Part shown: positions 1-62,300 of the stretch, piece after piece | Position numbering within the stretch: position 1 is the first letter of the stretch | How the letters are laid out: each line of letters opens with the position of its first letter | Assembly: GCF_048593235.1 (NCBI RefSeq) | Contig: NC_133619.1 | Coordinates: forward strand, 638,640,558-638,704,557 | Direction of reading: 5' to 3' | Source of the DNA: Sminthopsis crassicaudata | Taxonomy: Eukaryota | DNA: 64,000 bases | Notes under the pieces: generated by a model | The model's database searches: none | Told to the model about the DNA's origin: nothing | What the model saw: only the letters and a program-made list of their open reading frames with translations | Position numbers and translations under genes: made by a program

Positions 1-1
1 G

Positions 2-1159
<1,158 letters not shown>

Positions 1160-1578
1160 GGGGAGCGAGCAGGGAGGACCAGGGCTGGGGGCCACATGCA
1201 GAGGGTCGGCCCCACTCGGCCCTCTCCTCACCCTTCTGCAGAGAGAACTGACCAGCCCAGAGACTAATGGGGGAGCGGGGCCGGGGGTGGGGGGAGCAGA
1301 AGCCATCCCCTGTCCCCCTGAACCCATAGCACAACTCCCCTTCCCCCATGGTCACTGCCCTGGAAGGGGAGGGGAAGGAGGGGGATGGGCCAGTGATCGC
1401 CACCAGCACCCCGTCTGTGACTGTGCCTTTTGGGAAAGCTCAGGCTGCTGAACCCCCAGCCACAAGGCCTTCGGGGCTCCTCGGGAGCTGTGATGCGCCT
1501 CCAGACCAGAAGCCAGATGCGGTTGCGCTCATGGGCCGGGAGGGATGGGACCTGGTGCTCTTGGGTGGTTGGGACTCA

Positions 1579-1584
1579 AATAAA
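1579..1584 (+). terminator. Proximal polyadenylation signal for BCKDHA (second AATAAA at 2021-2026)
   Basis: AATAAA ~420 nt after the stop, followed by a T/G-rich stretch. Confidence 0.6.
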
Positions 1585-2215
1585 GACTTCTTTGCCTTTG
1601 GCTCAGGCCAAGCCTGGCTTTTGATCTGGGGGCTGGGGGCAGTGAAAGGGGGGGGGGGAATGAGGGAAGACCCTCTCTCAGGTGAAGAGCTGCCTCCAAA
1701 CAGGGCCACAGCTCGTGGCCACTCAGGGCCCGGTTCTGGTCTGAGGGGAGTACGCCTAGGCTAATCAACAGCCTGGTAAGGGGCACAGCTGGCACCGGAA
1801 CCCCCACTTCCTCATGTGTGCTCCAAAGTCCTTTCCAGGAGGCACTGGAGGGTGCAGGCCCATAGTTTTCCTAGGGCCAGGTGCTTTCCCCACAGGGTGC
1901 AGTGGGGGATGCTGGTCCTGAGGACAGAGGAGGGTCCGACCCCACGGCCCTGCGCGCCACCCCACCCGGGACAAACAGCAAGGACTCCTGAGCCCAGGTT
2001 CAGGGAGGGAGGGTGGTTTAAATAAATAGAAGCCGCTACAGCTTTATGCCCTCAGGTCCCTGCGGGAGGACCTTTCTCCTGGGATGGAGCCAGTCTGGCT
2101 CCCGAGCCCTCCCCTAGTCTACCCTTAGTCTGGGCTGTCCACAATCAGGCCCCCCCGGCCTCCCTTGCCTCCCACAGAGGCCGGGAAGAGAAGGCAGGGC
2201 CATGCTGCCCAGACC

Positions 2216-3397
2216 TCAGCAACGGGCCTGGAGGTTTTGCATAAGTTTCCAGAGGCGAATGGTGGTTTGGGGGTCTCGGGGCTGAGCCAGCACCAGGCGC
2301 TGGTGGACACAGGGGTCCCCCTGCTTGTCTCTGTCCGGCCAGTTGGTGAGGAAGCCGGGGTGATTCTGGGGGGCCAGGCCCAGCGCCTGGAAGCAGAGGC
2401 CGGAGTAGACGTCGTCGATGGGGAAGGGGAGCACCCTCTCGGCAGCCTTGAGCAGCCAGGGCGCCAGCTGCCCCGCGAACACGTAGCCGCCCCCGCTGGC
2501 ATAGGCCGGGTAGGGGCCGTCGTAGAAGGACTCGGGCACATAGTAGGGCCCCTTGGGGGTCCGCACGGGCACGGCCCGCTCAAAGACGTGGCCCAGGTAG
2601 AGACCCCGGGCAGAGGCGGGGGGCAGCCCCCGGAGCAGCCCCAGCAGGGCTCGGACGTTGACGAAGCTGTCGTCCTCCGCCCGGAGGACGAAGGTCACCT
2701 GGGGGCAGTGGCGGCCCAGCCAGCGCAGGAACAGCACATCCTTGAGGCTGCTGTTGAAGGGCACATCCAGGAAGTCCCAGAGCAGGAGGTCCCGGTAGCG
2801 CCGGCTCTCCCACTCCACTAGGGGCCCCAGGTTGGGGCCCGGCTCCCCCTGGGGGGAGCCCAGGAGGAAGAGCAGGCGGACTCCGCGCTCGGGCCGGCCC
2901 CAGGTCTCCCGGATGGCCTGGCGCTCCCCGAATCTGCCCGCAGCCGACTTCACGGCCAGCAGCAGGTAGGGGGCCTCGGAATCCGGGCAGCCCGGGACCC
3001 CCGCCCCTGACGCCCACCGGGGGTAATCTCGGCAGGCGGCCGAGAGGAGAAAGCGCCGGTAGGCCTCTGGGTAGGAGGAGAAGTCGGGGATCTCGGCGGC
3101 CGCCGCCCTCCCCCAAGCCTGGCAGTCCCCTGCCGCAGAGCCGGCGGGCCCGGGCAGGGCCTGGAAGAGCTGCTGTTGCCTGTTCCAGTAAGCGGAGGCT
3201 CCCGGCTGGCCCAGGCGCTCGGAGAGGTTGGCAGGCAGGGAAGGCTCGAGGGCGCCAGGCTTGGCCGGGACCTCCTTGTCGGGCCCCTCCTGGTGCCTCC
3301 TGGGCCGGAGGGGGTCCGAGCTCCACTCGATGTAAACCTTGAGGGCCAGCAGCGTGAGGACGGCCAAGAGGCACAGCAGGCACTTGGAGCAGCGCAT
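2216..3397 (-). CDS. B3GNT8: UDP-GlcNAc:betaGal beta-1,3-N-acetylglucosaminyltransferase 8, single coding exon, 393 aa
   Basis: ATG at 3397-3395 gives MRCSKCLLCLLAVLTLLALKVYIEW (type II anchor). GT31 motifs present: YLLLAVKS, RQAIRETWG, DLLLWDFLDVPFN, RAEDDSFV, YASGGGYV, FPIDDVYSG. Stop TGA at 2218-2216. Position next to BCKDHA as in human. Confidence 0.97.
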   Translation of the reverse strand: MRCSKCLLCLLAVLTLLALKVYIEWSSDPLRPRRHQEGPDKEVPAKPGALEPSLPANLSERLGQPGASAYWNRQQQLFQALPGPAGSAAGDCQAWGRAAAAEIPDFSSYPEAYRRFLLSAACRDYPRWASGAGVPGCPDSEAPYLLLAVKSAAGRFGERQAIRETWGRPERGVRLLFLLGSPQGEPGPNLGPLVEWESRRYRDLLLWDFLDVPFNSSLKDVLFLRWLGRHCPQVTFVLRAEDDSFVNVRALLGLLRGLPPASARGLYLGHVFERAVPVRTPKGPYYVPESFYDGPYPAYASGGGYVFAGQLAPWLLKAAERVLPFPIDDVYSGLCFQALGLAPQNHPGFLTNWPDRDKQGDPCVHQRLVLAQPRDPQTTIRLWKLMQNLQARC

Positions 3398-3432
3398 GGC
3401 AGGGGCCCCCGGGGCCAGGGGGGGCCCGGGGG

Positions 3433-3632
3433 CTGCAAGGGAAAGCAGGAATAGCAGCCGCGCCTCCAGCCCGGAGGGGAGGGGCTGCCCCCAGCCCCAG
3501 GAGGCCCCCCCCTCACCCCAGCGCCTCCTCTCCCGGGCCCTCCATCCCTCCCTCTCAAGCCCAGGTGCCCTCTTCTTCCCTCCCCTCCATCGGGGATCGG
3601 GGACCCAGGCAGCCCGCTCCCCTGGCACTCAC
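3433..3632 (-). other. Probable 200-nt 5'UTR intron of B3GNT8
   Basis: Minus-strand donor AA|GTGAGT at 3632 and acceptor ttcctgctttcccttgcag| at 3433, 35 nt upstream of the ATG. Confidence 0.6.
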
Positions 3633-4971
3633 TTCTGGGCCGGGGCCTCGGCCGCCAGCCCCGTCAGGTCAGGCTCCTCGGCAGCGGCTCCCGCCCGGAC
3701 TGAGCCAGTCTGGAGGGGAGGGGAGCGAGAGCCCCCAGGGGCCAGGGAGCGGCAGGGGCGGGGCCGGGGAGGAGACGGAGAGATACCGGCCGAGAGAGGG
3801 AGCCCAGGGCGTGTTCGGGCTGGTGCTGGGGCCGGGCCAGAGAGGGGCCGCCGGAGCCCGACCCCGAGAAATGGGGGGGGGCGGGGGGCCGCCAGAGAGA
3901 CCGGCCGGCGGCCGGGCAGGAGAGCCCGAGGGAGGCTGGAGGGGAGGGAGCGGCCTACTCAGCACATCCAGAAAGGGGGATCTGCTCAGAGGGGAGAGAG
4001 GGGAGGTGATGAAGGGGTACGGGGGGATGGGGGCTTTGGGGAACAGTCCAGAAGGGGGGGTCTGAGCAGTGGTGAGTGATAAAGGCAGGTGAAGGGGTAC
4101 AGGGAGATGGGGCTCCTCAGGACGTTCAGAAGGAGGGGTCAGTGGGGAGAGATAATAAAGGCAGATGAAAGGGGGGCCAAGGAAGCTGGGAGCCAGGGGC
4201 GGAGGAGGGCAGCCCCACCCCCACCCCATCCCCCCAGGGGTGGGAGATAGGCCGCAGGATCTGTTCACAAAGCTCTCGATTGAGAAATGGATGGCGGCTC
4301 TGGCTCCCCCACCATCAGGTCCCCCAGCCCCCTCCCCACCAGGTAGCCCCATCAGATACCTGGAGACTCTGCTGGTTGGGGGGGGGTCTCGGGCCCCTCT
4401 CCACAGCCCACCCCTCTCTTTCTCCCTCCTGCGGTGACTAAGGAACTTCCGGCCCCCTGAGGAACCTGGGTGTTTGCATCAGTCTGCCCACTGGGGCCTC
4501 GGGTACCCCAGTTTATCTCTTAACCGTCAACAAACGCTTCCTCACTGCCCACGGGGATCCGGAAGAGGCAGGCATTTCTCTACAGGGGTGCAGGGGTCGG
4601 CCCCCCAATTCCAGCTGCCTCCCGGCCCACCCCACGGGCCTTCATTTGTTCTGTTTTATTTATTTAACAGCCAGCGCCTGCGAGGTGGAGCCCTCCCCCT
4701 CCCGGGGAGAAGGCGGCAGTCTGATGTCCCCTGAGGTCCCCAGCCCCGGCCTCTGCCCTCCGAGAGCTGCTCCCCCGAGTCATTCGCTTCTGGGGTTCAG
4801 CTCCCCGCCCCAGGAACCGCCTGTCCCCGGCCCTGGCTGGGGAAACATGTGGCCAGGCTCCGCTCCGTGAGGCCGGCCGCCCACCTTCCTCTGCCTCATC
4901 CTGGGCCTCCCCTGAGAGCTCCCACCCCTCCCTCAGGGAGCCTCCCGACTCCAGACTGGTTTCCAACAATG

Positions 4972-4977
4972 TTTATT
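4972..4977 (-). terminator. Candidate polyadenylation signal for DMAC2 (another at 4655-4660)
   Basis: TTTATT on + strand = AATAAA on - strand, ~540 nt past the DMAC2 stop. Confidence 0.55.
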
Positions 4978-5450
4978 ATCCTGGCGTGAAGGAAGGGGGG
5001 CCCAGCCCCCTCCCTCCCTCAGACTAATGAAGCCCTTTGGGAGGGGACGGGAATTAATGGACTCGGCTCAGACACCACATCCCAGCAGAGGCTGAGAGGA
5101 AGGGGGGCTGCGGGCCGCGCTCATCCCGTGTTCCTTCCGTCCGTCACTCCCGCTGCCAGCCCCCCCCCGGGGGGAATTCTGGGCACAACCGCATGACCTG
5201 GGCTGGGGGGGACCCCACTCACTTATTCAGGGGTGCAGCAGACCTGGAGGAAAGCAGGCCAAAGCTTACTTCTGGGGCACCAATAGGTGGGGGGTGAGGG
5301 GGACAAGGAAAGGGGATCTGGGAGACATCCCTGATGGTGCCCCTCTATCCCAGGGGGTTTCTGTCCCACCCATGCCCCAGTAGTACAAGGGAGATGGGGA
5401 TCCTGGGGCTCGCAGAGCATCTAAGGAGGCACCGGAACAGTGGGGGCTCC

Positions 5451-5581
5451 AGGGATGCCCGCTGCTGTGCCCGCTGCTGCACCTGCTGCCATGTCCACTG
5501 CTGTGCCCGCTGTCACGCCCGCTCCACGCCCACTCTTGTGCTTGCTACTTTACCCGCTATGGTGCCCGCTGTTGTGCCCGC
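5451..5581 (-). repeat. 12-bp tandem repeat (GCGGGCACAGCA-like, ~11 units) straddling the DMAC2 stop codon
   Basis: Units read directly on - strand: GCGGGCACAACA, GCGGGCACCATA, GCGGGTAAAGTA, GCAAGCACAAGA, GTGGGCGTGGA (11 nt), GCGGGCGTGACA, GCGGGCACAGCA, ... Confidence 0.85.
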
Positions 5582-8500
5582 TGCCGCCTCCTCTTCTGCT
5601 TCCCTCTCGCCCTCAGAGAGCGGCTCCAGCCCCTCGGCATAGTCCGCCCCAACCACCTCACAATCGGGCAGCATCTCCTCCACCAGGATCTGGGTCAAGC
5701 CCTTATTGGACACGGCGGGGAGGTTGGAGATGTCCAGTCGCCGGAGGTTCCTAGAGGAAGCGTGGGGAGGGCAGACATTGCCGTGCTTTGGCCCTGGAGG
5801 CCGGGGCCCCGGGGGGAAGCCGGAGGAACGGGCCTGAGTGGGAGCTCTTACCCGAGGTGGTGGAGGCAGGCCAGGCCTCGCTCGGTGACCCTGGGACAGC
5901 CAGCCAGCGAGAGCTCCTGCAGGCAGCTGCCCAGGGGATACAGGTGGCTCAGACACCAGTCATCCACATAGGGGCAGCCACACAGCCTCAGAGACCGCAG
6001 TCCAGACAGCAGCACTGGCCAGAGAGGAGGGGGCGTGAGGCCGGCCTCCGGCCCAAGCCGGCCTCCACCCCAGCCGACCTCCCGCCCCACCCTGGCCAGC
6101 CCCCTCACCCAGGTTCTCCAGCCCATAGTAGTTGATGATGCAGCCGCTGGCGTCCACCTCCTCCAGGGACAGCTTCTCTAAGGGAGGACAGTTCCGAAAG
6201 AATCTTTTCATGTTTTGGGGCAGGATCCACTCCTGGTCCTGGAACCTGAGGGGTCACAGCAGGCAAGTGTCCCCCTCACCGATCCCACTCCCAGCCCCAT
6301 CACCACGACCCAAGGGGCTCCTCGATCCTAAGTCAGTGAAGCCGCCCCCAGATCCCACGTCCTGAACCCTACATTAAGTGAGATGTTCTCTGGGAAGCGC
6401 TGGCCACACAGTGGGTGCCATGTAAATGCTCAGACCCCCCCCATCAAACTCAAGTCTCCCTGAACCTCTCCTTGAGTCCCCAAACCCAAATCGCCCCAGT
6501 TTCCAGAGGACGCCCAGATCCTTACCTGACAGCTCCTCCTTGGCCCAGGACAAAGTTAGCCACCACCACGTCCGCGCTGTAGTATTTCAAGGCGGAGCTG
6601 AACACTCTGGCGGAGAACGGGGTGTGCTTCAGAGTGGGGAGGGGGAAGGAGGGAGGGCAGCTAGCTCTACCACAGGCTCTAACACGTGGCCCAACGAGGC
6701 ACGGAGATCGCTGAATGGGGGCTCCTCTGCCATCCTCTAGTCCCGAGGTGGGGGGAAAGGCGGACCCCGGGGGGAACGCCCGGGATGGGGCCCTGTTGGA
6801 GGCAGGACAGATCCCAATCGGGGAGGGGGTTCAGCCGTCTCCGGCTGATGGCCTGTGGCTTGGGTTCCCCGACGTGATCGGGCTGGGCTCCCTGCCCTCA
6901 CTGAAGAGGCGCTGGACTGGGGCTCCTAACGGCTTTTCTAGCTCCGACCCCCAGAATCAAGCGACTCACTGGCCCTCAAAAACCTGCACCGAGCGCTCAC
7001 TTGTTTTTCCTATACAGGTTCCAGCTCCAGAAATGGGCAATCCAGTCGCGTAACTGTTCCACGTCGTAGAATCGAGAAGCCATGGAGGCCATCAGCCCCC
7101 GCTGGCGGGCACGGCCGGGACTCTGATTCAGGTCGTAGATGGGGTTGGGGCGGTAACCAAAGTTACTCCGGCTGCTCAGGCTCCTGAGGGTCCCTCCTCC
7201 CGACCGTGTGGGACAGCCGGCTCTGAGAAGCTAGAAAGAAGGAAACAACAAAGGAAGAGGGGAACGCTGGCTTTCCGGAGGGTCTCCGCACCGGCCTTGC
7301 TCTCGGCCGCACAGTCACCACGAGAAGAGTCAGGGATAAAGGCCCAAGTCTCTACTGTCTCCTTCAGTCTCCCAGCCTGCACATCCAAATGTGTGTCCTG
7401 CTTCCTAGAGCCCCCACACGGGGCGGATTAAAACACAGCGTCCAGACTGGCGCTCTGGGGGGTCCCGGGACCGCCCCAGTCCGTGGGCTTCCTGGAGAAG
7501 TGATGAAGGCAGCAGAGCCAGGAGGCTGCTCTTCTCCCATGGCCGAGTCTGCCCCCAGCTTAGAAACTGTCACAACGAAACGGACTCATCGCGCTGTGAG
7601 CCAGTCATCCTATCACCAGGAACCACTGTCTCGTCAATTCCGCTGAGTTCATATCTTGTGGAAGAGTACATCAATCACACTGAACTAGAGGACTGTTAAG
7701 CACTAATCAGTGTCCCATCAATTCCGCTGAGTTAGCACCTTGTAAGAACCCTTGCTTCAGATATATTTCCCCAGAGTTCTGGCCCATTACAGAAGGGAGA
7801 GAGGGAAGGAGAAAGGAGAGAGGGAAGGAAGGAAAGGAGAGGAGGGAGGGGAAAGAGGGAGGAAAGGAGAGGAAGGGAAAAGCGTTTAGGAGAAGGAGGG
7901 AGAGAAAAAAGGGGGGGAGGGAAAGGGGGAGAGGAGGAGAGAGGGAAGGAGGGAGGTGACCCCCGGGCAGGGGAACCCCCACCTCACTAAGGAACGCCAG
8001 ATTTCCTGCTTTTTCCAGAATCATTAAAATTCCCCAATTCTTTTCAATTCCCAGATTTTTAAGTTTCAAAACTATTCCCAGACCCCATATTTAGGACACC
8101 CCAATTTCCCCCACCCAATCCTGCTAGCTCCCCTCTCCTGGGCAGCCCCTCCCCTTTCTCAATCAAGCTCCGCCCCCGGGCGTGTCCCGGTCTGCAGTCG
8201 AGGGGCATCTCCAGTTCCCGCCTACAACAGTCGTCTCCACGCAGGCTCCGCCCCTCGGCTTGCCCACCCTGGTTGCTCCTCCCCCGAAGGTTCTGTCTCA
8301 GCCTTTGCCCTCCCCTACCTTTCTCTAAGTCCCACCTCTAAGGCGGAGAAACCATCCCACGTGCTCTGGGGGGGGCGTTATCTCTCCGCCTTCCCCGCGG
8401 CCTTGTCAATTCGCCCGCCCCAACATCTCCACACTCCACTCTCCATTGGCTCCTCGGTCCTTCCTCCTTATCCTCCCATTGGTCCTCAGCCGGGCTCTTG

Positions 8501-8767: not shown

Positions 8768-9230
8768 CTTGGCTCTTTCCTCTCGTCAGAGTCTGCCGGC
8801 CTCGCCCTCGCAACTGTTCAACCATTGGCTCTTCTTTCTTGAGATCCCGCCTTCCGATGACATTTATTGGGTCCTCCCTCCCCAAATTCAGCCCTTACAA
8901 TCTCACCCAGGTTCCCGCCTCTGGGTTATAGACAAGCCACACCCCCCACTTTAGGCCATTCATTGGTTCCTTCCCTTCTTAGACCCCGCCTATTCTTAAA
9001 ATAGCCAGAGTCCCTCTCTCCGCATCTTTCCGAGGTCCTGGGCTCTCCTGCCGCCGGCCCCCGGCTAGTCCTTCCTGAAGTCTGCCCTCCATCCCTCCTG
9101 CTGCTGGGGGCTGCGGCAGCCAGGGCCCAGCGGGTGCCCCGGCAGCAGGAGGGATTGTGGGAAGGCGGCAGGAACCCGAGCCGGGCGGACTTTGGCCCCG
9201 GTGTCTGCGTGGCCCCGACAGCTCACGATG
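8100..9230. promoter_or_regulatory. CpG-rich bidirectional promoter region between head-to-head DMAC2 and ERICH4
   Basis: Start codons 460 bp apart and divergent. Multiple GC boxes (CCGCCC), six ATTGG (reverse CCAAT) at 8445, 8478, 8510, 8824, 8866, 8962, and a YY1-type CCGCCATCTT at 8761-8770 over the DMAC2 ATG. Confidence 0.7.
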
Positions 9231-10821
9231 GAGGCCTGGGGGCGGCTGGCCAGGGCCGGGCTGGTCCCGCGGGAGCTGGGACCCCCTCCCCGCGCCCTGC
9301 GAGACCCCAGCGGGCCCTGGAGCCGTGAAGGGGCCGTAGCCGGGGCGCAGGACCTTGTGGGCTGCGTGTGGGAGCAGCTGGTGAGACAGAGACAGAGAGA
9401 TGGGGAGAGACAGGGAGGGAGAGACAGAGAGATGGGGAGAGACAGAGACAGAGATGGGGAGAGACAGGGAGGGAGAGACGAGAGATGGGGAGAGACAGAG
9501 ACAGAGATGGGGAGAGATGGGGAGGGACAGANNNNNNNNNNNNNNNNNNNNNNNNNNNNNNNNNNNNNNNNNNNNNNNNNNNNNNNNNNNNNNNNNNNNN
9601 NNNNNNNNNNNNNNNNNNNNNNNNNNNNNNNNNNNNNNNNNNNNNNNNNNNNNNNNNNNNNNNNNNNNNNNNNNNNNNNNNNNNNNNNNNNNNNNNNNNN
9701 NNNNNNNNNNNNNNNNNNNNNNNNNNNNNNNNNGAGACGGAGAGAGATGGGGAGAGACAGAGAGAGATGGGGAGAGGCAGAGACAGAGAGCATGGGGAGA
9801 GACAGGGAGGGAGAGACAGAGAGATGGGGAGAGACGGAGAGAGATGGGGAGAGGCAGAGACAGAGAGCATGGGGAGAGACAGGGAGGGAGAGACAGCGAG
9901 ATGGGGAGACACAGGGAGGGAGAGACAGACAGAGAGACTTAGGGAGAGACAGGGAAGGAGAGACAGATGGGGAGAGACAGGGAAGGAGAGACAGATGGGG
10001 AGAGACAGAGAGAGATGGGGAGAGGCAGAGACAGAGAGCATGGGGAGAGACAGGGAGGGAGAGAGAGACAGAGATGGGGAGAGACGGAGAGAGATGGGGA
10101 GAGACAGGGAGGGAGAGACAGACAGAGAGACTTAGGGAGAGACGGAGAGATGGGGAGAGACAGGGAGGGAGAGACAGAGAGAGATGGGGAGAGACAGAAA
10201 TGGGGGGGGCAGAGACCGATGGAGAAAGGGGCAGCGGGCGGAAGCTAAGGCGGGAGAGAGCGTCCGAGGGACGACCGCGGGGAGCTGAGCCCAGCCACTG
10301 ACCACGGGCCGCAGGGACCGGGCTCTGGGGCCCTCGAAGCAGCCACAGCTGGAGGGAGGTGGCGGAACGGAGTGGAGATGGACTCGAACCACTGCCCCGC
10401 CCCCCATCCTTCTGTCCTACATTGTCTTTGGGGAGGAAGAAGAGAGTAGAGCAGCCGGTGGGGTGGGAAACCCCCAGAGATAGGGGAGAGGGAGGCAGAG
10501 GCCGAGCTGGGGGACCCGGGGCCAGCAGGGGGCGGAGGCTGGGGCGGCGGGGGTGGGGCCCTTACCTGCCGGGCTTGCGGGATGGCCCCCCCCCCCACTC
10601 CCGGGAATTGTGGCCGCCCCTCACCAGCGTTCTCCCCACAGCGGAGCCTGCGGAGGATGGACGTGCAGCTGTTCAATCGGCTGTGCGCCCTGGGCCTGGA
10701 GATCCGGGCCCTGCAGGAGGAGGCCGAGGCGGACGGGGACGAGGAGGGGGACGAGGAGGAAGACGGGCCGCGCGCCTCCCCGCCCGGCCGGCTCGTCCCA
10801 GACTTTGAAATCACCATCTGA
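9228..10821 (+). CDS. ERICH4: Glutamate-rich protein 4 (C19orf69), 110 aa: join(9228..9380,10642..10821)
   Basis: Exon 1 MEAWGRLARAGLVPRELGPPPRALR...VWEQL|gtgaga; exon 2 cag|RSLRRMDVQLFNRLCALGLEIRALQEE...acidic tract...PDFEITI*. Resembles human ERICH4 (MELWRQLNQAGLVPPGLGPPPQALR...LRRVDVQLLGQLCSLGLEMGALREE...PDFEMMI, from memory). Adjacent to DMAC2 as in human. Confidence 0.9.
9382..10200 (+). repeat. GA-rich minisatellite (GAGACAGAGAGATGGGGA / GAGACAGGGAGGGA units) filling the 5' part of the ERICH4 intron
   Basis: Directly visible repeated units; contains the assembly gap at 9532-9733. Confidence 0.9.
9532..9733. other. Assembly gap (N run)
   Basis: Run of N. Confidence 1.
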
Positions 10822-11035: not shown

Positions 11036-11439
11036 TGAGTCCAGGTTTTTAAAGATTCAGCTCGGAGGAATGGAGCTCAAGGAGGCTCTATCTGTGATTC
11101 AGTCCGAACCCCGCTCAGGTGACAGGCGGGATCCCGCGGACGGTTGGGAGCGGGAGGGGATGGGGCGCTCTGCCCACTGAGCTATCCTGCTCTCGGCCTA
11201 GAAACCCTCCGGGCATCGGATCAATGTTTGCTGGAGCTCCAGGAGAAGCGTGGAGGCGGCCGCTGGCTGGGCAGATTCGTGGCTGAGATGGGGACGTGGC
11301 CGCTTTTGTAAATGCGTGTTTGCAGGGGAGTCCCTGGGGGTGAGAGATGAGGGGGAAGGGAGCCGCCCGAGACCTCCTGGGGTCCCCGGCTGGGGAGAAG
11401 CTGGAGCCTCCTCTGTGGCGGGCGGGCCTTCTGCCAGGC

Positions 11440-14400
11440 TCAGGAGCTCCCCCGGCGGGCCTCCGCCTCCCGGAGCCAGGCCCCGAGCTGCTGGGCGATC
11501 TTCTGTCAGGGAGGAGAGAGCGCTGGAACCCAGCCCCGCCGCCACCGTTCCTGCCCTCCGGATTTAGAGACAGGAGGGGCTGAGGGGCCCCCCGCTCACC
11601 TGGCGCCCCCGGAGGAGGCTGGGCGGATCCGAGGGCCCGGCCGGGGCCATGTCGGCGCAGTGGGACGTGCCCCTCAGGAGCACGGCCGGCTCGGAGGGCC
11701 CCGGGGCCCGGAGCACGCCCAGCACGTGCCAGGGATCAATGTCACCTGGCGGCGGAAGGGAGATGCTGAGGGGGGCACTTGGGATGGTCCGGGAGTGAGG
11801 CTCTCTGGGAAGCTCACACAGCCCTTACCATTGACAAAGAACACACGGGTAGCCCCGGGGCTCTGGCCCCCATAGTAGGTGTTGGTCCGGGTCACGGCTT
11901 CGGCCACGGAGGCCGGCGAGAGCCCGAACACCTGGGCGCACAGCTGAAGCTGGGCAGGGAGCGCACTGCGCCTGGAGAAGGGGCAGCTGGGGTCCTCACA
12001 GGTGATATCTAACAGGGCAAAGGGGGGATCTCAGAGCCCCGCGGCAAACGTTCACGGGCTCGGAGGTGGGGGCCCACGGGGGCCTGCACAGGCTGAGACA
12101 CGGGCAGAGCGGCCCCACGTGGCCCAAGCAGAAGGGATGTTACAGAGGCAGGTCTGGCCTGGAGGTGGGTGACCAGGGCTGGGGGGGCGGCTCGGGTTCT
12201 TGTTTGGGCGGGAGGTTCTGCCGTGGGACCCCTTGGCATGCTCCCCGGGGGTGTCCAGGGGCCCAAGCACAGACCCGGCGGCGGGAGCTTCCTGGGCGGG
12301 GAGGGGGCCTGTACGGCAGAATGTGCGGCCGAGCCGGAGGTGGACGAGGAGGGATTGGGTCTGGCCTGGGCACCCTGGGCTTCCCCGCAGCAGGGGACGT
12401 CACTCACAGTATCCGAACTCTGTGCACGTCTGATAGAACCACTGCCTGTCGCTGCGGCCTGCCCAGGGCTTGGGGTCCCTCAGGGCGGCCACGGCAGCGG
12501 CCCTGGAGCTGGGCAGGCAGGGGAGGCCCAGAGTCCGCAGCACGAGCTACGGCGAAGCAGACCCCAGTCTCAGGGAGGAAGCTGGGGTCCCTCCCTCAGG
12601 GCCCCGGGGGCAGGACCGGCCCTCACCTGGATGGCATCCCGGAGCCCCGACAGGGCCCCCCCGCTCTGGTTGGCCAGGATGAGGTGGCAGAGGCCTCGCA
12701 CGTCCAGGGGGGCTCCGGCCTGCTGGTCATACTGCACGGCTGCCCCCACCAGCTCTTCCAGCTGCTCCAGGAGCTCGGCCTGGTCCTCGGGGGCCTCCAG
12801 GGCTCCACAGGCCCTCACCGCCGACTGCAAGGCGGCCCGAGCCTCCTCGCCCTCAGACAGGCCGCGGTCCAGCTCGGAGAAGGCCTCGGCCACGGCCCTC
12901 CGGCACTACCAGGAGGGAGCTTGGTCGCGCGCCTTCCTCCCTCCTCCCCCCACACAATGCCAGGCCCTGCCCGCCTTTCCCCTCAGCTGCCCGCAGCTAT
13001 GGACACCTGGGACAGCGGGAACCAGCCGCCCCGGGCCTAGAGCTGGTCTCTCCCCCCTGTCCCCAATGGCACGGAGGCCGGGAAATGCTTCTGCCAGTCA
13101 CACAGGTCACAAACCGCGAGTCCAGGAAGCTAACCTCCACCTCTGGAGGAGGCGGCAGAGCCCAGAGAAGGGGAGAGCTCAGGATCATGCAGGAAGAGAC
13201 CAGAACCGGGCCTTCTGGGTCCTTCCTGAATCCGCGGTCCCCTCTCCGTGCGGGGCCCTCCCTGGTCAGTCGTCGCTCCCCAAAGGGAGCAGAAAGGCCA
13301 GGATCAGAAGGGCCTCCCTTCAGGCGAGGACTGACTCCCCTCGGGGACCCTCTAGGGGTCCCCAGCAGGCTTTCAGCCCGTTCCTTCCCCCAGGACCACC
13401 CTGCCAAATGCTGCTCCAGGATAACCAGCCCCACCCTGAGGCCCCAGCCTCAAATCCCCGTGGCCCCTAGAGAGTACCTTAGGGGATCCACCCACTGTGG
13501 GGTCCTCCAGGCTCCTGGACACGCCCTGGGGGGAAGGCAGGACTCCAGATCTGGCCCTCCCCCCCCCCCCAGTCCCGGCTCCCTGCCCGCTCTGCAGCGA
13601 GGTCTCCTTACCACATTGTAGCCGGAGAAGTCCAGCTGGGCCTGCACAGGAGCCGAGGACGCCACGGCTGCCCAGATGAGGTGGGGGAACTAGGAAGGGG
13701 GAGAGCGGCTCGTGAGCGCTCGGGATGCCCCAAGATGGGTAGTGCCTGCTGAGGAGGCCGGCCTGGCTGATTTCCCCTAGCCTCAGCCCCCGCCTCTCCC
13801 TCCCTTAACCGCCCACCCCCCAACATGGGCTAGAGGGGGAGGATCCCGAACCTTCAGCCGGGCCCAGGCAGCCAAGGACCCGGCGTAGGAACCGCCGAAG
13901 CTGACCCATGGACTGGAGGCCGAGACATTGAAGATCCAAGAGAGATGGACGCGGGCGGAGGCCACGTCGGCCAGCCTGGGGTGGGGGGGAGACAGGGGGT
14001 AAAGAGGGATGGAGAAGTGCCACAGTGCCACGGACAGCAGTCGGACTGATCTGCAGGCCCGAGAAGGACCAAGGTTCTCCACACCCTGGGGGAGTCCTCC
14101 ACACCCCAGTTCTGAGGCTGGCTAGCTACCTGACCTTCAGTTTCCTCCTCCTCCTCCTCCATAAAATGAAGAGATTGCACTCAATGGTCCCTGAGTTCTC
14201 CTGCTCTAACCTATGACCATAATTATCATCCCTTGTCCCTGGGAGAAAGAGATGCAAAGAAACCCAGAGAGGCTGAGAACAAATGCCCCCCCCGGGGGGC
14301 CCCCTCTCCCAGCCATTTGGAAGGCCCAGGTGAATTAGGATCCTTGGTACGGAGGAAGAAGGGGCCCAGGTAGATCCTCAGAGGGAGGGAGACAGAGCCC

Positions 14401-15739
14401 CGGCTCTCCCTCTGCCCCCTCCGACATACTCACGCATGACGGCTGGACAGGAAGCGCAGCTGCGCCAGGCCCAGTCCTCCTGGGGGGACGCTGCGGCCGT
14501 AAAACCGGTGCTCCAGAGATACCACCAGGGCCCCCCACTGGGGGGCCAGGGTCCCGGGGTGGCCTGAGGGAGGGAACAGATGGAAGGGGCCACCCCCGGG
14601 CCCGATACCTGTCCACAGGCCTCCGGCCCAGCCAGTGTGGGTGACCCTCCTCGGCCTGAGGGACCCCGGGATGGGGAGCTTCCCACCCCACGGCTCGGGG
14701 CACCCCTCACCAAGCCTCGCCCCTTCTCGGGGCCCACGGGCTCCCATCCGTAGCCTTCCATACCTTTAAGCACAGAGCTCGGCCCGAGGGGGCCTTCGCC
14801 CCCAATGTGCAGGAACACGGGGCCGTCTGGGACCCTCCAGTGCCCGGCGTTCACCCAGTATCTCTGAGCAGGAAATTGGGACGGGGACGACGATGTCACT
14901 GATCAACCCTCGTGCCCCCCCCCATCACTCCTGATTCAACTACAGCCTCCAGCCCTAACCTCCCCCACGGGTCCCGGCCTTTGGTGCTCCTGCTCCCCTA
15001 GGTGACGAGGGATTGGGGAGCCAGGGAGTCCCCAGCAGGCCAGCTCGTCACCAGGAGGCGGACAGTCCCAGGCCGGCCTGAGAAGGGAAATCCGTCTGGA
15101 CGGGGAGCGGGTCAGACAAGCATATCTTATCCGAGAACAACTTGGGGATGTCCCTGAGTGGGCTGGGACAGTCCAAGATTTGTGGGGGAGAAAACTTTGG
15201 GTCTTGAAGGTTTCTTTAGGCAGAAAATATGGGGTCCAGCAAGAAAAGTTAGGAGAGATTTCAGGGCCTGGGGACCGGGATATGTGTGGGGGAAGGATTT
15301 GCACCCCAGCACGTATCTGGGTCCAGGCCCGGGCTGAGGGGTGGGCCTGGTCTGGGAGGGAAGCTAAATTCTGGGCAAGGGTTGTTCTGAGATGAGGAAA
15401 GGTCCCTAGGTGGGTCTGGGGGAGAGGCCCAGGAGCTGACCTGGAGGAAGGAGCGCCGGTCGGAGCTGTTAAAAGGATCCAGGGGCTGCCAGAGCCAGCC
15501 TTCCCTCGCCGCACTCGGCTCCCCCAGCTCAGCCCGCACTTCTTGGACATGCTCCCTAACCCGGCTCAAGAGGGACCCTGGGAAAGAGCGAGAGGAAAAG
15601 CGGAGCTCAGCCTGGGGATCCAGGGCCCTCCGCCGTCCCCCCGGTCCTCGGTGAAGGGGGGGGACACACCTGCAGTGGAGAGCCCCCAGAGGGACCCCAA
15701 GAGGAGCGGACCCAGCAGCAGCGCGGCAGCAGGAGCCAT
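11440..15739 (-). CDS. PRSS16: Thymus-specific serine protease (peptidase S28), 497 aa: complement(join(11440..11502,11600..11745,11829..12008,12408..12546,12627..12905,13478..13525,13612..13689,13852..13975,14434..14563,14764..14863,15441..15577,15670..15739))
   Basis: 12 GT-AG exons give a continuous 1494-nt frame. Signal peptide MAPAAALLLGPLLLGSLWGLSTA; motifs QPLDPFNSSDRRSFLQRYWVN, FLHIGGEG, LEHRFYG, SFGGSYAGSLAAWARLKFPHLI (catalytic Ser), DRQWFYQTCTEFGY, VNGDIDPWH (Asp), SHCADM (His). Exon sizes 70/100/130/124/78/48/146 match human PRSS16 as recalled. Confidence 0.93.
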
Positions 15740-15783
15740 GGCTCAGGAAAGGAGGGGATGGTCTGGAAGTTCCCTTGGGGACC

Positions 15784-15823
15784 CTTATAATACCACCCCA
15801 CGCCCCCAGCCTGGACAAGCGTC
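15784..15823 (-). promoter_or_regulatory. PRSS16 core promoter: TATA-like TATAAG plus GACGC (FOXN1-type) motif
   Basis: cttata at 15784-15789 (TATAAG on -), ~45 nt upstream of the ATG; gcgtc at 15819-15823. Confidence 0.5.
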
Positions 15824-16694
15824 TTTAGGAACAGCCCAAGCTCACCAGGAATGCCCCAAAGCCCAGCGGGAGCCTGCCCAGACATCTGCAGCCCCCCACC
15901 ATTCCCTTCTCAGGTTACTCCCCCAAACGCAGGCTCTCCTTCCTCTGGTCCCATGTCTCTCAGTACTACGGATGTAGAATCATAGATTTAGAGCAGGAAA
16001 AGATTTTAACAGCTATCCCCTTCCCCATTTTACAAAAGAGGGAAACTGAGTCAGGAAAATAACAGGATTTGTTCAATAAACAGACTGAGGTAGAGTCAAG
16101 AATCCAAGCCAGGTCAGGTAGAAGGCGGCGTCTGAATGGTCTCTGGAAGGAACCCAAGGTGAGGAAGGGCCCCCCAGACCAGGATGGCTGCACCCTAAAA
16201 TGCAGGAGCCAGGGGGGACCCCAGAGCTACGGGCAGGGACTCAATGGCGTGACTCGGGATTGGCCTTTGGCAGCTGAGCCACGGGGGATTGGGCTGGAGA
16301 TTCCCGGGGCATGGAACAAGTGGGGAGAAAGGAGACGGCCCCAAGCCCCTTCTGTCCCCGCCTCTAGAGCTCCCTCGGTCTCTCCCTTGTCCCCCATTCC
16401 GTGCCCCCTGCCTCCCCAGGCTCTGGCCCTGGCCCTGTGTTCCAGGGAAAAGCAAGGCCTCCCAGGTGAAGATTATCGCTCCTGGTTGGGGGCCGCGGGC
16501 ACCTGCCCCGGCTTGCCACCCTAGAACACAGACTGGGGAGAGGGGGGAGAAAGCTGCCTGCCCTGGGACCCCGCCCACGGCTGCCCCATAACCCAGAAGG
16601 CCCCTGGGGAGCCCAGCGTTTCCAGAGGGAGTCTGGCTCAGCAGGGGAGGGGGAGGCCCTCAGCTTGGCCCCGTCCCCCCTGCTCCCCCCACTC

Positions 16695-19467: not shown

Positions 19468-24701
<5,234 letters not shown>

Positions 24702-25526
24702 GCTCCCGGGACCGGGGACCCAGGGGTCCAGGCTGAAAGGGTGGTGGGAGTGGCCAGTCAGGGCTGCAGTAAAGCAGCCACCTCCAAGCAATCAAGGAGA
24801 GTGTAGCGACAAGGACCGGCAGAGCCCCTCCCTCAGGAAAAAGGTCTGGGGATGGCCAAGTACTTCAGGGCTCTCCCAGAGACGCAGGGAGGCAGAGGAG
24901 GGCCGGGGGCTCAGAAAGCTGCGCGCAAAGGGAGAGATTCTGCCAGAGAACCCGGGAGAGTGAGAGACATGCGGTGGCAAGAGCGTGTGGGGGCCCACCT
25001 GGAAGAGAGAAGACAAGGTGGGAACTCAGACTGAGGAGGCTGGCAGGGAGCGCTCTCCAGGACTACAACGGAGACTAGTTTGCAGAGGGAGATTTAAATA
25101 CAATTACTGAGGGATGGGCAGGGCCACGACCTCCGCTGCCCCACCCAGCTTTGGCCCGAGGGCTAGGAGGGAGCGACCCCCGCGGGCGTCCCTTTACGTC
25201 CACCTACAAGAGGGCAACACCAAGTAGTCCCTGCCCTCGAGAAGCTTGCGTCCCTGCCAGGGCGCGGGCCCAGGGGCCTCGCCACCATTTCTGTCTTGGT
25301 CTCGGCCCCTCTCCCTGCGATCTGACCCCCCCTTCCTGCAGGCTGGGACCCTTCCCCCCCCCCCCCCGGCTTTTTTCTGGTCTATCTCCGCTTTGTCCAT
25401 CCCTGTATCCCTCCGCCGGCTTCCCCCTCTGCGTCTCCTCAGCCCGTCTCTCCCCCAGCCCAGCCCGGTTGCCGGGCCGTTTAATCTCCGGACTCCCGGT
25501 GTCCCCTCCCGGAGCTGGCTGCTCAC

Positions 25527-59348: not shown

Positions 59349-62300
59349 TTTTTTAAATTAATTTTATAATTATAACATTTTTTGACAGTACATATGCATA
59401 GGTAATTTTTTTTACAACATTATCCCTTGTACTCCCTTCTGTTCCGAATTTTTCCCCTCCTTCCCCCCATCCCCTCCCCTAGATTGCAGGCATTCCCATA
59501 CATATTAAATATGTTTTAGTATATCCTAGGTACAATATATATGTGCAGAACCGAATTTTGTTATTGTTATTGTTGCAAAGGAAGAATTGGATTCGGAAAG
59601 TAAAAATAATCTGGGGAGAAAAACAAAAAATGCTAAGAGTTTACACTCATTTCCCAGTGTTCCTTTTCTGGGTGCAGCTGATTCTGTCCATCATTGATCT
59701 CCTGGAACTGGATTAGATCTTCTCTATGTTGAAGATATCCATTTCCATCAGAATACATCCTCGTACAGTATCATTGTTGAAGTATATAATGATCCCCTAG
59801 TTCTGCTCGTTTCACTTAGCATCAGCTGATGTCTCTCCAAGCCTCTCTGTATTCATCCTGCTGGTCATTTCTTACAGAACAATAATATTGCATAACATTC
59901 ATACACCATAATTTACCCAACCATTCTCCAATTGATGGACATCCATTCATCTTCCAGTTTCTAGCCACTATGAAAAGAGCTGCCACAAACATTTTGGCAC
60001 ATACAGGTCCCTTTCCCTTCTTTAGTATTATTTCCTTGGGATATAAGCCCAATAGCAGCACTGCTGGGTCAAAGGGTATGCACAGTTTGATAACTTTTTG
60101 GGCATAGTTCCAAATTGCTCTCCAGAATGGCCGGATTCTTTCACAGCTCCACCAACAATGCATCAGTGTCCCAGTTTTCCCCCTCCAACATTCATCGTTA
60201 TTTGTTCCTGTCATCTTAGCCAATCTGACAGGTATGTAGTGGTATCTCAGAGTTTGATCAGTAGTGATTTGGAACACTCTTTCATATGAGTGGAAATAGT
60301 TTTAATTTCATCATCTGAAAATTGTCTGTTCATATCCTTTGACCATTTATCAATTGGAGAACGGCTTGATTTCTTATAAATCAGTTCTCTATATAATTTG
60401 GAAATGAGGCCTTTATCAGAATCTTTAACTGTAAAAATGTTTTTCCAATTTGTTACTTCCCTTCTAATCTTGTTTGCAATTGTTTTGTTTGTGCAAAAGC
60501 TTTTTAATTTGATGTAATCAAAATGTTCTATTTTGTGATCAATAATGGTCTCTAGTTCTTCTTTGGTCACAAATTCCTTCCTCCTCCACAAGTCTGAGAG
60601 GTCAACTATCCTATGTTCCTCTAATTTATTTATGATCTCATTCTTTATGACTAAATCTTGGACCCATTTTGATCTTATCTTAGTATGTGGTGTTAAATGT
60701 GGGTCCATGCCTAGTTTGTGCCATACTAATTTCCAGTTTTCCCAGCAGTTTTTGTCAAATAATGAATTCTTATCCCAGAAGTTGGGATCTTTGCGTTTGT
60801 CAAACACTAGATTGCTATTTTTATTCACTATCTTGCCCTGTGAACCTAACCTATTCCACTGATCAACTAGTCTATTTCTTAGCCAATACCAGATGGTTTT
60901 GGTGACTGTTGCTTTATAATATAGTTCTAGATCAGGTACAGCTAGACCACCTTCATTTGATTTTTTTTTTTCATTAGTTCCCTTCAAATTCTCGACCTTT
61001 TGTTCTTCCATATGAATTTTGTTGTTATTTTTTCTAGGTCATTAAAATAGTTTCTTGGGAGACTGATTGGTATAGCACTAAATAAATAGATCAGTTTAGG
61101 AAGTATTGTCATCTTAATTATATTCGCTTGGCCTATCCAAGTGCACTTAATGTCTTTCCAATTATTTAAATCTGACTTTATTTTTGTGGCAAGAGTTTTG
61201 TAATTTTGCTCATATAATTCCTGATTTTCCTTTGGTAGATATATTCCCAAATATTTTATACAATCGACCGTTATTTTGAATGGAATTTCTCTTTGTATCT
61301 CTTGCTGTTGGATTGTGTTGGTAATGTCTAAAAATGCTGAGGATTTATGTGGATTTATTTTGTATCCTGCAACTTTGCTAAAGTTTTGAATTATTTCTAA
61401 TAGCTTTTTAGCAGAGTCTTTGGGATTCTCTAAGTATACCATCATGTCATCTGCAAAGAGTGATAGTTTGATTTCCTCATTTCCTACTCTAATTCCTTGA
61501 ATCTCTTTCTCAGCTTTTATTGCTGAGGCTAGCATTTCTAGTACAATGTTGAATAGTAATGGTGATAGTGGGCAACCTTATTTCACTCCTGATCTTACTG
61601 GGAAAGGTTCCAGTTTATTGCCATTACATATGATGTTTACTGACAGTTTAAAATATATGTTCCTTATTATTTGAAGGAATAGTCCATTTATTCCTATACT
61701 CTCAAGTGTTTTTAGTAGGAATGAATGTTGGATTTTATCAAATGCTTTTTCTGCATCTATTGAGATGATTATATGGTTTTTGTTAATTTGGTTATTGATA
61801 TAGTCGATTATGCTAATAGTTTTTCTAATATTGAATCAGCCCTGTATTCCTGGTATAAATCCCACTTGGTCATAGTGTATTATCCTGGGGATGATTTTCT
61901 GTAGTCGTTTTGCTAATATTTTATTTAAGATTTTAGCATCAATATTCATTAGGGAGATTGGTCTATAATTTTCTTTCTCAGTTTTCAGCCTATTGGTTTA
62001 GGTATCAGTACCATGTCTGTGTCGTAAAAGGAATTTGGTAGGACTCCTTCAATCCCTATTTTTTCAAATAGTTTATATAGCATTGGAGTTAGTTGTTCTT
62101 TAAATGTTTGGTAGAATTCACATGTAAATCCATCTGGTTCTGGGGATTTTTTCTTAAGAAGTTGGTTAATAACTTGTTCTATTTCTTTTTCTGAAATGGG
62201 ACTATTTAGACTATTTACTTCTTCCTCTGTTAATCTGGGCAAGCTATATTTTTGAAAGTATTCTTCCATTTCATTTAAGTTATCGAATTTAGTTGGGCAA

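Follow-up and report, generated by a model that had tools for sequence, protein, structure and literature searches.

PRSS16, which encodes the thymus-specific serine protease (TSSP), is often listed as a gene of the extended major histocompatibility complex (MHC), and its disease associations (type 1 diabetes, schizophrenia and arthritis) are read against that MHC background. In mouse, TSSP is an S28 serine peptidase of cortical thymic epithelium which alters the MHC class II peptides selecting some CD4 T cells. The paralogues DPP7 (DPP2) and PRCP, with solved structures (3JYH, 4EBB and 3N2Z), are like PRSS16 in fold family and in the arrangement of Ser, Asp and His, and can be aligned with it over nearly the full length. 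For human and mouse alike, PRSS16 is assigned to the extended class I part of the MHC (PMC1309616 Table 1). Mouse Prss16 is a reported direct target of FOXN1, for which GACGC is a reported consensus site (PMC9229346). Here we describe the PRSS16 gene of the marsupial Sminthopsis crassicaudata, which is contained in a stretch of 64,000 nucleotides, referred to below as the window (NCBI RefSeq assembly GCF_048593235.1, contig NC_133619.1, positions 638,640,558 to 638,704,557 of the forward strand). Whereas placental PRSS16 is found in that part of the extended MHC class I region which carries the histone cluster, the window gene stands beside CRX and a BCKDHA block. It is very probably the single functional marsupial PRSS16 orthologue (TSSP, family S28) at the position ancestral for amniotes, beside ERICH4/DMAC2-B3GNT8-BCKDHA and CRX.

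Gene structure and orthology

PRSS16 occupies the minus strand of the window from 15739 to 11440 and comprises 12 exons, with the ATG at 15739 and the TGA at 11442-11440. Exon lengths of 70, 137, 100, 130, 124, 78, 48, 279, 139, 180, 146 and 63 nt give a coding sequence of 1494 nt (497 codons plus TGA) encoding 497 amino acids (aa) with no internal stop. All 11 introns have GT-AG ends and consistent phases, the splice sites having been read from the DNA, and a three-frame translation of the minus strand over the region is a chain of open segments. The region has a GC content of 0.62-0.69 and contains no run of N, the nearest gap (9532-9733) being in an ERICH4 intron. The small exon 7 was located by scanning in-frame candidates between AG and GT against the Antechinus protein. 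The exons are listed here together with joints seen in contigs from public sequencing runs of the same organism, which were compared over 11200-15900.

15670..15739, minus strand: exon 1, with the ATG and a hydrophobic signal-peptide-like N-terminus; donor CAG/GTGTGT; joint 15577/15670 in an RNA-like contig
15441..15577, minus strand: exon 2, with AG/GT sites; joints at both ends in runs X5 and X11; tblastn match to marsupial PRSS16
14764..14863, minus strand: exon 3, Pfam S28 15-49; joints 14863/15441 and 14563/14764
14434..14563, minus strand: exon 4, Pfam S28 49-92; joint 13975/14434
13852..13975, minus strand: exon 5, with the catalytic serine motif GGSYAG; Pfam S28 93-133
13612..13689, minus strand: exon 6, Pfam S28 134-160; donor GTG/GTAAGG
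13478..13525, minus strand: exon 7, 16 codons, placed by homology only; best candidate score 71 against 45 for the next; 48 nt as in Antechinus
12627..12905, minus strand: exon 8, 93 codons, variable inserted domain; joint 12546/12627; named full-length matches are placental PRSS16
12408..12546, minus strand: exon 9, Pfam S28 304-320; joints at both ends
11829..12008, minus strand: exon 10, Pfam S28 323-385; joints at both ends
11600..11745, minus strand: exon 11, with the Asp (DIDPW) and His (GTSHC) motifs; Pfam S28 383-432; joints at both ends
11440..11502, minus strand: exon 12, acceptor ending in CTGACAG, then 20 codons and TGA; joint 11502/11600

Database searches were made with single exons or with public protein identifiers, and the joined 497-aa model was used only in the local frame check, alignment, tree and dN/dS estimate. 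The Peptidase_S28 profile (PF05577) was matched colinearly by exon pieces at positions 15-49, 49-92, 93-133, 134-160, 172-258, 304-320, 323-385 and 383-432 of 434, consistent with a predicted S28 domain that spans the protein end to end (profile 15-432 of 434, with exon 7 placed by homology). The motifs GGSYAG, DIDPW and GTSHC are present in the model at residues 173-178 (Ser175), 430-434 and 454-458 (His457) respectively, and in the Antechinus protein (88.5% identical) these motifs align to the catalytic triad residues (Ser, Asp and His) of the DPP7 structure. The window protein is predicted to have the catalytic equipment of S28. Exon 10 alone, being too short, gave no useful match when compared with solved structures and the full-length Antechinus orthologue was used instead. 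The first 24 residues look hydrophobic when judged by eye and form a candidate signal peptide.

Protein identity of the window model was 88.5% to PRSS16 of Antechinus flavipes and 79-83% to that of other marsupials, falling to about 63% with placental PRSS16, 49-53% with sauropsid PRSS16, 43-46% with frog and zebrafish PRSS16 and 38-39% with a K12H4.7-like paralogue. The annotated marsupial genes compared (NCBI gene models of Antechinus flavipes, Monodelphis domestica, Dromiciops gliroides and others) thus range from 79 to 88.5%. Mapping of the annotated gene of Antechinus to the Antechinus locus gave 12 exons equal in length to those of the window gene, except for exon 9 at 142 nt against 139 (one codon). 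Beyond the species itself, a dS of 0.185 and this one codon fewer in exon 9, nothing else separates the window gene from that of Antechinus. Against solved structures Antechinus PRSS16 scored only 155 bits with DPP7 and 134 bits with PRCP, which are different paralogues; scores between marsupial and placental PRSS16 exceed 600 bits.

Exon 8, with its 93 codons, is the least conserved part of the S28 family, and a search with it against 1.84 billion representative proteins returned 14 matches. The named full-length proteins among these were placental "thymus-specific serine protease", the top matches included unnamed short fragments from sequencing-run assemblies, and a gecko "thymus-specific serine protease-like" fragment was also matched. 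Annotated PRSS16 genes of at least seven marsupials came up in a word search with the bovine protein, each species occurring once among the PRSS16 matches listed. In a quick IQ-TREE analysis of 41 sequences the window protein grouped with that of Antechinus (SH-aLRT 96) in a marsupial clade (99) which was sister to placental PRSS16 (100), the two mammalian groups sharing a long stem, and mammalian PRSS16 was nested within vertebrate PRSS16, separate from the K12H4.7-like genes. The human and mouse proteins (TSSP) belong to this sister clade and, at about 63% identity, have the same catalytic motifs as the window gene. Judged by identity, score and tree, the window gene is a true PRSS16 orthologue and not PRCP or DPP7. 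These data bear out a first-pass annotation of the window, which had described an intact 12-exon PRSS16 at 11440-15739 with retained introns and a complete Ser-Asp-His triad: its limits are exact, the frame is open, 11 GT-AG introns and all three motifs were found, and the grouping with PRCP or DPP7 that would have spoken for another gene was not seen.

Genomic context

The genes flanking PRSS16 in the window were identified by Pfam matches and by alignment to other loci, and are as follows.

8-475, plus strand: BCKDHA exon, Pfam E1_dh
2216-3628, minus strand: B3GNT8, Pfam Galactosyl_T
about 5513-5956, minus strand: last exon of DMAC2, without a Pfam match; identified by blastn to the Antechinus, Buteo and Alligator loci and by colinearity
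9228..10821, plus strand: ERICH4, exon 1 from 9228 (DUF4530, E=1.3e-8), exon 2 with its stop at 10819-10821; colinear with Antechinus
19468..24740, minus strand: CRX, last exon 19468-20283 (TF_Otx, E=3.7e-18, and the end of the homeodomain); colinear with the Homeodomain+TF_Otx gene of Antechinus

The block of BCKDHA exon, B3GNT8 and DMAC2 takes up positions 1..5985. As exon 2 of ERICH4 ends at 10821, ERICH4 and PRSS16 stand tail to tail about 620 bp apart, and CRX is upstream of PRSS16 in the same orientation. Positions 836-24740, which run from BCKDHA to CRX and include both PRSS16 junctions, are colinear with the independent assembly of Antechinus (nucleotide identity 70-87%). The NCBI gene order Homeodomain+TF_Otx / Peptidase_S28 / DUF4530 / LRR / Galactosyl_T / E1_dh recurs in Antechinus, Monodelphis and Dromiciops, and is thus conserved in three marsupial orders (Dasyuromorphia, Didelphimorphia and Microbiotheria respectively). 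Colinearity with Antechinus and the gene calls in three orders together indicate that the adjacency is real and common to marsupials. An assembly mis-join that placed PRSS16 between ERICH4 and CRX might be suspected from the run of N at 9532-9733 in the ERICH4 intron, but both junctions fall within the colinear region, the order is annotated in Monodelphis and Dromiciops, and the DNA-like run X1 gives unbroken contig cover of 11315-15897; we attach next to no probability to such an error.

To place the marsupial arrangement among vertebrates, a 288-residue Antechinus query was compared with proteins of at most 504 aa, a range which excluded most full-length placental proteins and in which sauropsid, amphibian and fish PRSS16 surfaced. 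The gene order in Buteo buteo is an H3.3-type histone gene, a Homeodomain+TF_Otx gene, PRSS16, a 242-aa gene, E1_dh (BCKDHA), RNase_PH (EXOSC5) and B9-C2 (B9D2), and that in Alligator mississippiensis is a Homeodomain+TF_Otx gene, PRSS16, a 244-aa gene, a 389-aa single-exon gene, E1_dh and RNase_PH. By blastn, the 242- and 244-aa genes match the last exon of DMAC2 in the window and the 389-aa gene of Alligator matches B3GNT8; ERICH4 was seen at the locus in marsupials only, as compared with Buteo and Alligator. The order Otx/CRX-PRSS16-DMAC2-(B3GNT8)-BCKDHA is therefore common to a crocodilian, a bird and marsupials, indicating that it is the ancestral amniote state.

The opposite polarity, with the extended-MHC position ancestral and PRSS16 transposed or duplicated into the ERICH4-CRX interval in marsupials, could be argued from DPP7, which sits on human 9q34 in a region paralogous to the MHC and might thereby point to an early tie between S28 genes and the MHC. 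The extended class I location of the human and mouse genes would also fit it (PMC1309616 Table 1). However, Buteo and Alligator hold PRSS16 between an Otx/CRX-class gene and DMAC2-(B3GNT8)-BCKDHA-EXOSC5, the marsupial arrangement extends over three orders, and no marsupial occurs more than once among the PRSS16 matches listed; we consider a marsupial transposition highly improbable. The first-pass annotation, which had set PRSS16 between ERICH4 and CRX within a BCKDHA-B3GNT8-DMAC2-ERICH4 block, is upheld on this point by the Pfam matches and by Antechinus, and the mis-assembly it had allowed for is not borne out at junctions that are colinear in one further assembly and recur in order in two more species. 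It had left the choice between an ancestral position with a move in eutherians and a transposition or duplication in marsupials; sauropsid synteny agrees with the former and contradicts the latter.

The placental loci have a different setting. Bovine PRSS16 lies on a 54.6-Mb chromosome with no called neighbour gene within 10 kb, and its locus has homologous exons in the same order as the window gene and shares with the window only these exons. In sheep, one gene model joins a histone domain to S28, in keeping with the known extended class I location of the human gene. The window gene is not an extended MHC class I gene by this measure, as the genes around it over 25 kb have their human orthologues on 19q13, and the 64-kb window gave no histone match. 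The opossum MHC is on chromosome 2q, where the published map carries no mention of PRSS16 and the histone cluster is absent from the MHC scaffold (PMC1351924). Since PRSS16 of placentals and that of marsupials form sister groups with a long stem in common, the placental gene is the same gene, moved. The H3.3-type histone gene of Buteo (L007 1-576, intron-containing, upstream of the Otx-class gene) was considered as a link to the placental histone cluster and rejected, having no counterpart in the window.

Outside amniotes, the neighbour of zebrafish prss16 is an enoyl-CoA hydratase gene, and in the stickleback Pungitius pungitius the neighbours are Mo25, BRICHOS and a Meis-class homeobox gene. 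The hydratase gene may be ech1 and the Meis-class gene meis3, both of which are on human 19q13. The fish neighbours give no clear answer as to the pre-amniote state, and the gecko fragment, turtle and Bombina showed no polarising neighbours within 10 kb.

Several repeats were observed in the window. The ERICH4 intron contains at 9379-10198 a purine-rich minisatellite of GAGACAGAGAGAGATGGGGA type, with units of about 20, 77 and 171 bp, which brackets the gap at 9532-9733 and yields long spurious open reading frames (ORFs), rich in E, R and D, on both strands. About 1.3 kb at 31353-32650 matches the flanks of bovine PRSS16 (L004 1669-2065, 5854-7015 and 25884-26133) at 66-72% in both orientations; it has no long ORFs and is probably an old interspersed repeat of cattle and marsupials, for which an RTE/BovB type is a guess. 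In the repeat-rich, AT-rich zone beyond CRX, three consecutive ORFs of 151-254 aa at 59822-61535 on the minus strand look by eye like a LINE-1 ORF2 remnant.

Promoter, selection and transcripts

The 5' flank of PRSS16 is the best-conserved non-coding part of the locus (87% against Antechinus) and includes the following feature.

15783..15823, minus strand: putative PRSS16 proximal promoter, with GACGC at 15823-15819 and the TATA-like TATTATAAGG at 15792-15783

The GACGC motif lies about 30 bp upstream of the TATA-like TATTATAAGG, and both are conserved at the aligned position in Antechinus and Dromiciops; human and mouse PRSS16 likewise have a GACGC motif in the proximal promoter region. The combination of GACGC and a TATA-like box is suggestive, but suggestive only, of FOXN1-driven thymic expression. 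PRSS16 would have its own compact promoter, carrying a candidate FOXN1 site, and, with control lying within about 100 bp of the start, the gene could keep its thymic expression after a move.

Comparison of the window gene with that of Antechinus over 497 codons gave a dN of 0.060, a dS of 0.185 and a dN/dS of 0.33, and PRSS16 is under purifying selection. Contigs of runs X5 and X11 are spliced exactly as modelled at introns 1-4 and 8-11, that is at eight of the 11 introns. An alternative joint (15576/15845) connects exon 2 to an upstream leader (15846-15885, minus strand), skipping exon 1 and with it the signal-peptide-like start, and the leader donor CCTG/GTGAGC is conserved in Antechinus and Dromiciops. 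An ATG at 15885, in frame via the alternative joint, was tried as a start and rejected, the Antechinus sequence having a 1-nt deletion and that of Dromiciops no ATG. As this ATG is not conserved the leader exon is read as probably non-coding.

Two further differences were noted among the runs. A contig of run X10 skips 245 bases in intron 9 (12163-12407) with GT..AG ends on the plus strand, which could be either an indel polymorphism in a GC-rich intron or an antisense splice. On the 3' side of the PRSS16 stop, at 11277-11315, 37 bases are absent from runs X1, X5 and X11, an indel between the assembly and the individuals sequenced.

A number of points weigh against a functional gene at an ancestral site. 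The contigs of X5 and X11 are equal and probably represent one data set filed twice, and these runs are only guessed to be RNA, their tissue not being stated. No spliced joint for introns 5, 6 or 7 is present in the X5 and X11 contigs shown, which read through intron 5 (13690-13851) and intron 7 (12906-13477), so that a fully processed mRNA is not demonstrated, and as no spliced contig covers exon 7 that exon rests on homology. PRCP and DPP7 stood outside the tree and were compared by score against solved structures. The sauropsid Otx-class gene is called CRX/OTX5 by position and was not separated from OTX2 by a tree, and the timing of the placental move is one that we infer from placed genomes which include neither monotremes nor Atlantogenata.

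The retention of introns 5 and 7 beside eight removed introns could reflect either intron-retaining isoforms or pre-mRNA. It could also be taken, along with the missing joints at introns 5-7 and the alternative joint that skips exon 1, as the mark of a decaying or non-productive copy, transcribed with introns 5-7 retained and giving no working protease. Set against this are the intact frame, the canonical splice sites, the dN/dS of 0.33 and the conserved exon structure; the tissue sampled may not be thymus, and as assembled contigs drop minor isoforms a missing joint is not evidence. A non-productive copy is thus very unlikely, and the preferred reading remains a functional PRSS16 at its ancestral site.

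Discussion

By analogy with the mouse enzyme, the product of the window gene would be a secreted or endolysosomal protease that acts in cortical thymic epithelium to trim MHC class II peptides. As a putatively self-contained unit of about 4.5 kb, the gene could be moved as DNA with its introns included, and such a movable unit fits the appearance of placental PRSS16 among the histone genes of the extended MHC. The neighbourhood of CRX is described as unstable, ETCHbox genes having arisen by CRX duplication in the placental stem (Maeso et al., PMC4904359), and PRSS16 may plausibly have been lost from the site against this background. We lean slightly towards a fuller account in which PRSS16 became linked to the MHC as a placental novelty: a unit of about 4.5-6 kb with a FOXN1-type promoter would have been excised from the CRX-BCKDHA block and inserted as DNA into the histone region in the placental stem, in the same episode that broke up the CRX neighbourhood and yielded the ETCHbox genes. 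That selection acted on the new linkage to MHC class II as such would be a stronger version of this account, and it has no support here.

The gene and its location are already present in the public annotation of several marsupial genomes, and in this respect the window gene is a routine orthologue. In the literature searched, PRSS16 synteny was nowhere described for animals other than placental mammals, and a derived, placental origin of the linkage between PRSS16 and the MHC may be unreported, though it can be read from a genome browser.

If the linkage is indeed confined to placentals, PRSS16 would be no evidence for an ancient cluster of antigen-processing genes and no relic of an old immune supercomplex, and its thymic expression would be independent of MHC chromatin context. 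The compact, conserved promoter of PRSS16 would represent a small, testable regulatory unit.

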